A DNA stretch of 64,000 nucleotides from contig CDROCS010002735.1 of assembly GCA_977020255.1 (NCBI GenBank), positions 186,001-250,000 on the forward strand, given 5' to 3'. The notes below the pieces were generated by a model. The model saw only the letters and a program-made list of their open reading frames with translations. It did not search any database and was not told the origin of the DNA. Within the stretch, counting starts at the first letter, position 1. Each line of letters opens with the position of its first letter. The translations under genes were made by a program, and so were the position numbers. Of the stretch, positions 18,724 to 22,099 are shown one piece after another. This stretch comes from Obrimoposthia wandeli. Lineage: Eukaryota.

Positions 18724-18966
18724 ATGGAGCGCGTAACAATTTTTGGCCGCAAAGGCTGTGGTTTCTGTGTGAGAGCAAAAGACTTATGTGAAGAGCAAGG
18801 CCTAGAGCATCGTTACATTGATATTCAAGAAGAGGGTATTAGCAAAGCCGATTTAGAAAAAACAGTGGGTAAGCCTGTTGAAACGGTTCCACAAATTTTT
18901 ATTGGCACTACGCACATCGGTGGTTATTCTGAATTCGCCGCTAAAGTAGCAGCTTCTACCGCATAG
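18724..18966 (+). CDS. grxA: Glutaredoxin 1
   Basis: IFGR.GCGFCVRAK, KTVGKPVETVPQIF, HIGGY. Confidence 0.93.
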   Translation: MERVTIFGRKGCGFCVRAKDLCEEQGLEHRYIDIQEEGISKADLEKTVGKPVETVPQIFIGTTHIGGYSEFAAKVAASTA

Positions 18967-19718: not shown

Positions 19719-20252
19719 TCACCAGCACAAGTTCTTATACATGATGGTAGTCGCGGCATAGCCATCTAATGCAGGGTTTAAAGCAAAACCTGGTATCACA
19801 CCCGCCGTTATGTAGCCTAATGATAAATATAAATTTTGTGCACTATCTCCTGTTTTAGTATCTAGCACTAATAATGATTTCCCCAATGATAATCCTTGCT
19901 GTTCTATACGGAGCATTAGTTTCTTGGCAATGCCTTGGCGATGAAAACTTGGATGCACTAACAGTTTTGCAACATCTGCCCTATGTTGCTGATTAGGAGG
20001 GGTATCAATATCCAAAATAACACAACCTACAATCAAGCTATCCACTTTAGCTACCCATAAAAACTGCGAACACGACCTTACAGCCTCAGTTACAAAGTTC
20101 TCCCAATAAACAGTACTTTGCTCGAGTGAAAAAGGTTGTATAAAACCAACACTGGCACCTTGTTCAACACATTGATGTAATATCTGAGCTAAAGGCGTAA
20201 TAGCTTGTGAATATTGGGCTGGTGTTAATTGTTCAATCTGGATTTCGTTCAT
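19719..20252 (-). CDS. GNAT family N-acetyltransferase
   Basis: GASVGF, HRADVAKLLVHP..HRQGIA (motif A), LLVLDTKTG..A..LY.SLGY...G.IPGFA. Confidence 0.9.
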   Translation of the reverse strand: MNEIQIEQLTPAQYSQAITPLAQILHQCVEQGASVGFIQPFSLEQSTVYWENFVTEAVRSCSQFLWVAKVDSLIVGCVILDIDTPPNQQHRADVAKLLVHPSFHRQGIAKKLMLRIEQQGLSLGKSLLVLDTKTGDSAQNLYLSLGYITAGVIPGFALNPALDGYAATTIMYKNLCW

Positions 20253-20466: not shown

Positions 20467-20538
20467 ACTTTCTATAATTGGTTTCTACAATAGTAACCGT
20501 TATAATCGCTTTTTTTATGATTTTTGCAGGAGTTAAAC

Positions 20539-20634
20539 ATGCGAATATTAGTCGTCTCTATTCTTTTATTAACCTTAACGGCATGTGTGGGCATCCCTGA
20601 CTCCGACGGATTTTTTGGTATTCCAGGCTTATAG
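20539..20634 (+). CDS. Putative micro-lipoprotein A, 31 aa (MRILVVSILLLTLTAC-VGIPDSDGFFGIPGL)
   Basis: RBS AGGAG 7 nt upstream; basic N-terminus, hydrophobic core and lipobox L-T-A-C with Cys16. Confidence 0.7.
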   Translation: MRILVVSILLLTLTACVGIPDSDGFFGIPGL

Positions 20635-20681
20635 TACTTTTTAAGCTTTGAATTTTTAACTCTATAATCAAGGACAATATA

Positions 20682-20750
20682 ATGAAAATTTTCACACTTT
20701 TATTGATTACTTTAGTGCTACAAGGGTGCGTCGGAATACCAGGCTTTTAA
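20682..20750 (+). CDS. Putative micro-lipoprotein B, 22 aa (MKIFTLLLITLVLQGC-VGIPGF)
   Basis: RBS AAGGA 8 nt upstream; lipobox L-Q-G-C with Cys16; shares CVGIP and GIPG[L/F] with the upstream ORF. Confidence 0.65.
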   Translation: MKIFTLLLITLVLQGCVGIPGF

Positions 20751-20776
20751 GTATTAACGATGCTATTTCAATTTCA

Positions 20777-20804
20777 AAATAGCTAATATACACATTAGCT
20801 ATTT
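20777..20804. terminator. Probable bidirectional terminator between the micro-lipoprotein pair and the yihY-family gene
   Basis: Perfect 11-bp stem aaatagctaat/attagctattt with a 6-nt loop. Confidence 0.65.
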
Positions 20805-20854: not shown

Positions 20855-22099
20855 CTATTTCTTGGTAAATAGGCTATCTAACGGTACGTTAAGCACCGAA
20901 AACTGCTCAGCTTTTACTTGTTTCAGCTTACTATCTAAATTGTCAATCCAAAGTCTATCATCATGGCTATCTTGCATTATTGATTCTCCTGCTGGATGCG
21001 GGATTGGCCAAGGTAAAATGTGATTTAATTGCTCTAAGCTTAAATCATTAAGTGAACGAGCTAATAAGTACTCACCTTGCTCTGAACGACAAATAATTGC
21101 ATTGTCTACCAGTATTTGCTGATAGCTATCCCAACGCTGCTGGTTAAGTCCTGCGACGCAAGTTAGTAATTTTTCATCAGACAACGTTTTTCCGCAATTT
21201 TGTGCCTCCCATAATTTACTCAAAACACCAATAATAGTATGCAAGTGTGATTGAAAACCAGCACTAGCTGCAGTATTGTAAACGGTTAACAACTTAGTTA
21301 ATTCGGCTCCTAAAAGTATGATTATCCAAGTGATAAATATCCATACCAGAAACAAGGGCACTGCAGCGAAAGCACCATATATAAGCTCGTAAGATGGGAA
21401 CTGCACGGCAAAAAAAGCGAAGGCACGTTTGGCTATTTCAAACAGCAATGCCACAACAACAGCACCTATTAACGCGTTTTTGAAAGGCACATTGCAGTTA
21501 GGTACTGCTGAATATAGCAAACTAAAGGCGGCGATTGAAAGTACCAGGGGTAGTAATGATAGTAAGTTACTGCGTCCAACGATGGCGGTCGCTTCTGAAA
21601 TTATTGACAAAGAAGCGATGTATGAAGAAACCAGTAACCCGACTCCGATCAAGATAGGGCCTAAACTTAAAATAGCCCAGTAAAGCAAAAAGCTAGACAT
21701 CCCTTTGCGCGAATGTTTTACCCGCCAGATTCGATTAAACGCCGCCTCAATGTTTTTCATCATCATTACCGAAGTAATAAATAGAAAGATAGCGCCGACG
21801 GCGGTTAAACGTTTTGCTTGGGAAGTGAAATCAGCTAAATAATCTTGGACGACTTCCCCAGTTGCAGGTACAAAATTTGAAAACACCCAATTTTGCACTT
21901 CTGCCCCTACTCCTTGAAACGACGGGATCAGCGCTAATACTGAATAAGTAACGGTCATTAACGGCACGACTGCAAACAATGTGGTGTAAGTTAATGCTGA
22001 AGCATTTACAACCCCTCCATTTCCCCAAAATTGGCGGATTAATGTAATGATAAAGTTAAGAGCATTTGCTGTGTGTTTATTGATCATTGTAATTAACAC
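20855..22099 (-). CDS. YihY/virulence factor BrkB family membrane protein
   Basis: ASALTYTTLFAVVP, AFNRIWRV, YW..LSLGP.LIG, FELAK-like FEIAKRAF, Y.LIYGAFAAVPLFLVWI. Confidence 0.92.
   Translation of the reverse strand: MLITMINKHTANALNFIITLIRQFWGNGGVVNASALTYTTLFAVVPLMTVTYSVLALIPSFQGVGAEVQNWVFSNFVPATGEVVQDYLADFTSQAKRLTAVGAIFLFITSVMMMKNIEAAFNRIWRVKHSRKGMSSFLLYWAILSLGPILIGVGLLVSSYIASLSIISEATAIVGRSNLLSLLPLVLSIAAFSLLYSAVPNCNVPFKNALIGAVVVALLFEIAKRAFAFFAVQFPSYELIYGAFAAVPLFLVWIFITWIIILLGAELTKLLTVYNTAASAGFQSHLHTIIGVLSKLWEAQNCGKTLSDEKLLTCVAGLNQQRWDSYQQILVDNAIICRSEQGEYLLARSLNDLSLEQLNHILPWPIPHPAGESIMQDSHDDRLWIDNLDSKLKQVKAEQFSVLNVPLDSLFTKK

Follow-up and report, generated by a model that had tools for sequence, protein, structure and literature searches.

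A question raised by this locus is what a bacterium might do with lipoproteins that carry only a handful of residues on their lipid anchor. Two open reading frames (ORFs), here called genes A and B, lie in tandem within the window (the whole 64,000-nucleotide stretch of DNA that was analyzed, C2735:186001-250000), and they predict lipoproteins with mature parts of 16 and 7 residues. We favor the view, at a probability of roughly 0.55, that A and B are co-transcribed ultrashort lipoprotein genes whose products would be lipidated, sorted to the outer membrane (OM) and used there as tethered ligands or mini-subunits.

Layout of the A-B locus

The initial annotation of the window had described two tiny ORFs, each with its own ribosome-binding site (RBS), a 15-residue lipoprotein-type signal peptide and a cysteine at position 16, and both were found exactly as noted (Table 1). 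The synonymous differences that it had quoted between the CVGIP stretches of the two ORFs are in the DNA as well. A degenerate CVGIPG pattern matched the window twice, at the A and B sites, against 0.04 matches expected. Judged from their conservation in relatives, A and B are almost certainly translated genes and not chance ORFs.

Table 1. Coordinates of the A-B unit and its flanking genes in the window.
Feature	Position	Strand	Description
GNAT acetyltransferase gene	19719-20252	-	divergent upstream neighbor (context only)
Candidate sigma-70 promoter of the A-B unit	20478-20506	+	TTGGTT, 17 nt, TATAAT (20501-20506)
RBS of gene A	20528-20532	+	AGGAG, 6 nt 5' of ATG
Gene A	20539-20634	+	31-aa prolipoprotein, MRILVVSILLLTLTAC followed by VGIPDSDGFFGIPGL; ORF reading
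Gene A, predicted signal peptide	20539-20583	+	lipobox LTAC; Cys codon 20584-20586; stop 20632-20634
Gene A, predicted mature peptide	20584-20631	+	16 residues, CVGIPDSDGFFGIPGL
RBS of gene B	20670-20674	+	AAGGA, 7 nt 5' of ATG
Gene B	20682-20750	+	22-aa prolipoprotein, MKIFTLLLITLVLQGC followed by VGIPGF; ORF reading
Gene B, predicted signal peptide	20682-20726	+	lipobox LQGC; stop 20748-20750
Gene B, predicted mature peptide	20727-20747	+	7 residues, CVGIPGF
Hairpin	20777-20804	.	11 perfect pairs, -12.8 kcal/mol, z = -5.7
yihY/BrkB-family inner-membrane protein gene	20855-22099	-	convergent downstream neighbor (context only)

The TATAAT box that had been claimed upstream of A is present, and the TTGGTT/TATAAT pair is likely to serve as a sigma-70 promoter. 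A promoter scan of the window did not list this pair because its -35 hexamer matches at only 3 of 6 positions. In most relatives, a TATAAT or GTTATAAT box lies 30-45 nt 5' of the ATG of A within DNA that is otherwise only ~50% identical among relatives (120 nt upstream of A compared). Before the ATG of A, most relatives have purine-rich GGAG/AGGA motifs, and at gene B the relatives have AAGGA/AGGG/AGAG-type motifs at the same distance as in the window.

Downstream of B, the initial annotation had reported a perfect terminator stem. The stem stands as described, but its identification as a terminator is not secure: the hairpin has no U-run on the + strand and a terminator scan of the window did not call it. 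We regard this A+T-rich element as a hairpin between convergent genes, and a role as a two-way terminator is possible. Four of 5 relatives likewise have a stable hairpin 3' of gene B, of unrelated sequence and in two cases with U-runs, and such an end to the cassette fits a discrete two-gene transcription unit. A search for RNA runs that cover the locus found none. The nearest relative (G001, L016) keeps the stem despite changed sequence (AAATAGCTAAT/ATTAGCTATTT in the window versus AAAACAGCT.../...AGCTGTTTT in G001), with what looks like at least one paired change.

Source assembly and nearest relatives

The contig of the window sits in a 1.35-Gb assembly of 6912 contigs (G000) that holds at least 11 lspA, 18 lgt and 12 lnt genes scoring over the family cut-offs. 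These many complete bacterial genes are spread over many contigs, and the assembly is therefore a mixture of organisms. The window's own contig carries no copy of lgt, lspA or lnt, and the copies elsewhere in the assembly are not assignable to this bacterium. Some of the contigs that carry them are several Mb long, and a few of the genes contain 7-14 in-frame TGA codons, a hint of bacteria whose genetic code recodes TGA.

Relatives of the source bacterium were reached through its YihY protein. This protein shares 91% identity with the YihY of an Oceanospirillaceae MAG; for other Oceanospirillaceae, Nitrincolaceae and related gammaproteobacterial genomes, and for Osedax symbiont Rs2 genomes, the value is 71-77%.

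Conservation of the cassette and selection on the mature peptides

In the GTDB family to which the nearest relative belongs (190 genomes), the A-B cassette was found in the genomes of eight related species (G001, G002, G003, G004, G184, G185, G186 and G188). The degenerate CVGIPG pattern gave 23 matches over this genome set, of which five were true cassettes and the others, in other frames, arose by chance. Three more cassettes came from an A-core pattern, in G003, G184 and the Osedax symbiont Rs2 genome G004; their B peptide is CAGIPGY or CAGIPGF. The cassette is also present on the metagenome contigs L101, L103, L125 and L126.

Across these cassettes the mature consensus is CVGIPD[ST][DE]GFFGIPG[LI] for A and C[VA]GIPG[FY] for B, and the signal peptides of both genes have little in common beyond hydrophobicity and the lipobox. 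The spacer between A and B ranges from 16 to 197 nt among relatives. This spread is due in part to tandem repeats in G002, whose spacer (L017:304-421, - strand) is made of about five tandem copies of a ~16-nt unit (CCAATAAAGAGCCTTC-like).

Nei-Gojobori-type counts over all pairs of unique sequences place the mature parts under strong constraint. For the mature part of A, pS is 0.76 and pN 0.041 (pN/pS 0.054), and for that of B, pS is 0.81 and pN 0.052 (pN/pS 0.065), so that synonymous sites are near saturation in both. The corresponding values are pS 0.68, pN 0.257 and pN/pS 0.38 for the signal peptide of A, and pS 0.70, pN 0.336 and pN/pS 0.48 for that of B. Selection at the peptide level in these frames is the only reasonable reading of such ratios, as had been proposed from the window by itself. 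Conservation of frame and lipobox in relatives, which the initial annotation had set as a test of its proposal, extends to every relative found, and the Cys and the stop position are kept along with them.

A wider family of gene A

Gene A fits each position of the pattern C-x-x-IPD-x-x-G-x-x-GIPG-[LIFV]-stop, with a Cys followed by exactly 15 residues, I4-P5-D6, G9, G12-I13-P14-G15 and a hydrophobic last residue. By this resemblance it is a local variant of a widespread 16-residue family in marine Gammaproteobacteria, the main type of which has the motif Cys-x-x-IPD-[LM]-PGP-[I/L]-GIPG-[L/I/F/V]-stop. The suggestion that the locus belongs to a micro-lipoprotein family is thereby upheld insofar as the family is real and unnamed, but A is no peculiarity of this locus, and B is found as an addition in one clade only.

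The DNA pattern C-xx-IPD-xx-G-xx-GIPG-[LIF]-stop was found at 58 loci on public metagenome contigs, and at all 58 a signal peptide and lipobox stand directly before the Cys and the stop follows residue 16. A profile search of 1.84 billion representative proteins returned 28 matches at E <= 0.001, 26 of which are true members (each a cluster of proteins at 50% identity). One of these members is an over-extended gene call of 125 aa; the others are 31-63 aa long, and all members but two end in ...IPD[LMA]PGP[IFLV]GIPG[LIVF]. Of the remaining two of the 28 matches, one is a false positive of 288 aa and the other a divergent lipoprotein of 36 aa (P0008). An A profile run over 401 genomes of the order gave hundreds of weak matches, mostly to unrelated signal peptides, and two remote members with the mature parts CVGIPDLPGPIGIPGL and CSPIPDAPGPIGIPGI. 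The initial annotation had allowed that the ORFs might be 5' stubs of a longer lipoprotein gene; among the homologues found, none is a longer lipoprotein.

Three of the retrieved proteins depart from the usual form. The mature part of P0008, CAGNPDADGVFEIPGNYV, preserves the PD-x-DG-x-F-x-IPG spacing and looks like a more divergent relative of window-type A, and the family may therefore be broader than the patterns used. P0026 and P0027, the sole length variants seen, have 10-19 residues beyond the usual stop (GIPGIEIQPF..., GIPGIEAQPL...), and their mature parts begin with CSIPD or CAIPD and are thus one residue shorter at that end.

The DNA patterns fixed positions 4-6, 9 and 12-15, so that part of the invariance of the main family is built in and overstated, and divergent members such as V4 variants are undercounted. 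Evidence independent of the patterns comes only from the profile search of the 1.84 billion proteins and from the unfixed positions. Among the latter, P8, P10, I11 and the hydrophobic residue 16 are also highly conserved.

The family appears to have escaped description, in line with what had been supposed. Pfam and NCBIfam hold no model for it, and all weak matches there span the signal peptide only. The sole name given to family members by any source is 'hypothetical protein', the motif strings occur in no paper, and searches of the general small-lipoprotein literature returned nothing on the family. A PDB sequence search gave signal-peptide noise only, and the ESM Atlas gave no match at >= 0.9.

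Distribution of the main type and the window type

Family members are present in 32 of the 190 genomes of the GTDB family (17%), in exactly one copy each, and 9 of 400 sampled Gammaproteobacteria (~2% of the class) carry a single copy. A reversed-pattern control gave zero matches in both sets. The main type (IPDLPGP-x-GIPG) accounts for 24 of the 32 carriers, and at none of these 24 loci does a B-like ORF lie within 700 nt of A. The other eight carriers have the window type, with B downstream in every case, and B is found only beside window-type A.

The two types never co-occur in the 32 carriers. Since they are mutually exclusive and single-copy, the simplest reading is that window-type A and main-type A are orthologues, the former standing in for the latter in one clade, to which the addition of B is specific. 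B resembles A with its middle removed (CVGIP + G[F/Y]). The signal peptide of B is unlike that of A, and the duplication would therefore be old.

Predicted processing and sorting

Both precursors satisfy a PROSITE PS00013-type lipoprotein rule (PS00013/PS51257), which calls for K/R within the first 7 residues, an uncharged h-region and a Cys at 15-35, with the lipobox pattern applied here as [LIVMFWSTAG]2-[LIVMFYSTAGCQ]-[AGS]-C. The n-region is positive in each (R2 in A, K2 in B), and the lipobox context is ...TLTAC in A and ...VLQGC in B. The Q at -2 in B is allowed by PROSITE, lies outside the classical consensus and recurs in the family. In the family at large, 64 of 72 loci pass the strict rule, and the eight that fail are near misses with a double Cys, an N at -2 or a truncated contig.

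LspA and Lnt are encoded by single full-length genes in four cassette-bearing relatives, and Lnt N-acylates the small synthetic diacylglyceryl peptide FSL-1 in vitro (PMC6828757). From the SPII features of the precursors, the enzymes of the relatives and the activity of Lnt on a small peptide, we infer that the products are triacyl-Cys peptides. That the A and B precursors are SPII-processed and lipidated is thus a prediction with a good deal in its favor, and we consider it quite probable.

In the proposed route, the 22-31-residue precursors would insert into the inner membrane post-translationally, Lgt would diacylglycerate Cys16, LspA would cut off the 15-residue signal peptide and Lnt would N-acylate the Cys, yielding triacyl-CVGIPDSDGFFGIPGL and triacyl-CVGIPGF. 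At +2 the family has V, S, L, A or I and never Asp. If the +2 sorting rule, which was established for Enterobacteriaceae and not for this bacterial group, holds here, the Lol system would deliver these lipopeptides to the inner leaflet of the OM.

Genomic neighborhood

Clustering of all ORFs within 5 kb of 65 loci revealed no gene family common across lineages. Immediate neighbors vary by lineage, and those sampled include DUF4197, Usp, EEP nuclease/phosphatase, globin, HIT, SMR, ParA-like ATPase, ABC-F and methyltransferase genes. Since these neighbors are functionally unrelated, the gene behaves as a stand-alone accessory envelope gene. The neighborhoods show no clustering with dedicated modifying or export enzymes, which a RiPP-type lipopeptide precursor would call for.

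In one metagenome group (L077:998-1804, with similar-sized upstream ORFs in L078, L082 and L106), a same-strand DUF4197 gene precedes the micro-lipoprotein gene by 70-120 nt, the DUF4197 assignment being Pfam-checked in L077 only. This DUF4197 gene is the sole hint of an operon partner, a possible and lineage-specific one.

Within the window-type clade, a GNAT gene lies 0.3-2.8 kb upstream of the cassette in 6 of 6 genome loci, with one to three genes between them in four, which amounts to regional synteny and not tight linkage. Adjacency of yihY and the cassette is confined to the window and G001. The initial annotation had looked to synteny next to yihY for a check on the locus; it is present in the nearest relative but not elsewhere, and we therefore dropped it as an argument. 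Elsewhere in the window, an 80-aa ORF in a long intergenic stretch (18724-18966, + strand) has 96% protein identity in G001, and the genes that flank it have lower identity to that genome (79-91%).

Possible function of the short tails

What might such short tails do? Gly recurs at every third position (G9, G12 and G15 in A; G3 and G6 in B) among several Pro residues, and the tail of A has an invariant Asp6 and a hydrophobic free C-terminus. The tail is an extended, turn-rich, anionic head group and not a folded domain. The near-invariance of its 16 residues argues for a specific binding partner. We propose that the tail would serve as a ligand or mini-subunit, tethered to the membrane, for which a conserved envelope protein provides the docking site, much as LptDE does for LptM, and B, which carries both ends of A, would then target the same site as A. 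By analogy we assign this role tentatively, at somewhat short of even odds.

An alternative is that the products are no protein subunits but gene-encoded lipids or lipopeptides, free amphiphiles that serve as OM lipid surrogates, vesicle cargo or signals to other cells or a host. Each would be a triacyl-Cys with a 6- or 15-residue Pro/Gly-rich anionic head, made with the housekeeping Lgt, LspA and Lnt only. We think this unlikely. If it were true, the lipoprotein pathway would be a route to natural lipopeptides in marine Gammaproteobacteria, and CVGIPGF would possibly be the shortest natural lipoprotein product.

It is also conceivable that the lipopeptides are released in vesicles or into the medium, where they would act as signals, surfactants or host-directed ligands and not as envelope subunits. 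Triacyl-Cys peptides are classic innate-immune agonists, and in size the predicted products recall natural lipopeptides more than proteins. The source assembly is mixed and apparently host-associated, Osedax symbionts are among the close relatives, and the neighborhoods lack a conserved partner gene. However, linkage of the family to an exporter, a receptor kinase or an immunity gene was seen in no lineage, and triacylated lipoproteins normally stay in the OM. The family is, moreover, common on free environmental metagenome contigs and single-copy, and in this it resembles a housekeeping accessory. Release is therefore an unlikely fate for these peptides.

The processing of such short substrates is an assumption, and A and B might instead be uncleaved, unlipidated single-helix inner-membrane proteins whose conserved periplasmic tail modulates another inner-membrane protein. 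The hydrophobic segment could span the membrane, and single-helix modulators are frequent among bacterial proteins under 50 aa. What makes this alternative quite unlikely is the pattern of conservation: an invariant Cys and, before it, an equally invariant small residue stand exactly at the end of the helix in more than 100 sequences in which the helix itself drifts, and the hydrophobic part has a pN/pS 6-7 times as high as the tail. An invariant Cys site next to a drifting helix is expected of a cleaved signal peptide and not of a functional helix.

A further proposal makes the products bulk amphiphiles of the membrane and not specific ligands: phosphorus-free anionic 'lipids', templated by the ribosome, that fill the inner leaflet of the OM. 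Phosphorus-sparing lipid remodeling is frequent in marine bacteria, and the carriers of the family are marine. The head group is very short with acidic charges only (net charge about -1 to -3), and gene A is preceded by a perfect -10 box and a strong Shine-Dalgarno sequence. Yet a bulk role has no need of 16 nearly invariant residues at fixed spacing, the spread of the family is patchy (at the 17% of the GTDB family and ~2% of the class given above), and no Pho-box-like sequence was seen upstream of A. We consider this proposal very unlikely.

The initial annotation had also raised the idea of a toxin/antidote pair, which would make A and B an entericidin-like couple of small lipoproteins. The tandem arrangement recalls ecnAB, and the nearest named ESM Atlas cluster is that of the colicin lysis lipoproteins (0.76, against a 0.9 threshold). 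Most family members are solitary genes, however: A stands alone in 24 of the 32 family carriers and at all main-type metagenome loci. In addition, neither Pfam Entericidin nor Lysis_col matches, and A and B have like sequence ends, not complementary ones, under equal purifying selection, all of which leaves such a pair highly improbable.

Finally, that A and B are not genes at all, and are instead chance ORFs, remnants of a longer lipoprotein, a leader peptide or an RNA element, can hardly be maintained: both ORFs fall under the usual annotation cut-offs and the exact window protein is missing from a collection of 15 billion proteins, but the frame, start, Cys and stop are conserved over saturated synonymous divergence, longer homologues were not found, an Rfam search of the window gave no match, and the unit has no co-oriented gene downstream and ends in a hairpin that faces the convergent yihY gene.

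Novelty and significance

Small bacterial lipoproteins are a known kind; it is the family of A, its 16-residue length and the 7-residue product of B that are undescribed in curated libraries and the searchable literature. Bacterial lipoproteins are usually folded proteins, or peptides of at least 20-30 residues, on a lipid anchor, and we know of no natural lipoprotein gene with a mature part as short as that of B. Should the predicted processing take place, A and B would be the new lower bound on the size of substrates for Lgt, LspA, Lnt and Lol, and they would provide a defined and easily synthesized pair of natural triacyl lipopeptides for tests of envelope function and host recognition. The locus also illustrates that genes of 22 codons can be certified by comparative genomics at saturated synonymous divergence. 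Both A and B had been missed by annotation or left as 'hypothetical' despite strong constraint.

Comparison with known small lipoproteins

The products predicted for A and B may be set beside several small lipoproteins and lipopeptides. Like the Mycoplasma lipopeptides of the MALP-2/FSL-1 type (10-14 residues), they would be acyl-Cys peptides. MALP-2 and FSL-1 are proteolytic or synthetic fragments of large lipoproteins, whereas genes A and B encode nothing past the short peptide. With the colicin lysis or bacteriocin release lipoproteins (PF02402), A and B share a small size and a short mature part, in keeping with the nearest named ESM Atlas cluster, but genes of the A/B family are chromosomal and unlinked to a bacteriocin operon.

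The entericidins EcnA/EcnB and Atu8019 (PF08085) are likewise encoded by very small lipoprotein genes in tandem. Their precursors are 41-52 aa long, with some 20-30 residues in the mature part, which forms an amphipathic helix. A and B differ in having mature parts of 16 and 7 Pro/Gly-rich residues, and most members of their family are solitary. Homologues of the entericidins have been detected and studied as small lipoproteins in Agrobacterium and Sinorhizobium (PMC7296081, PMC10117765). The Entericidin (PF08085) and colicin lysis (PF02402) HMMs did not match A and B (E up to 10) or the main type (E up to 1).

[quoted passage not shown] As a small lipoprotein with a conserved lipobox and a short Gly/Pro-containing mature N-terminus, LptM (PF13627, NF047847) has the same general plan as A and B. 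The motifs differ, reading CG-x-KGPL... in LptM and C-x-x-IPD-x-x-G-x-x-GIPG in the family, and in LptM the conserved stretch is followed by tens of further residues and the gene has conserved neighbors, neither of which is true of A and B. Nor are A and B themselves LptM: the LptM model gave no match to either, with two main-type members and one divergent relative it aligned in the signal peptide alone and reached 12-15 bits, short of its cut-off of 27.7, and cassette-bearing relatives have a separate, true LptM elsewhere in the genome. As an analogy for how A and B might work, with a lipid anchor and a short conserved stretch fitted to a partner in the envelope, LptM is nonetheless the best that we know.
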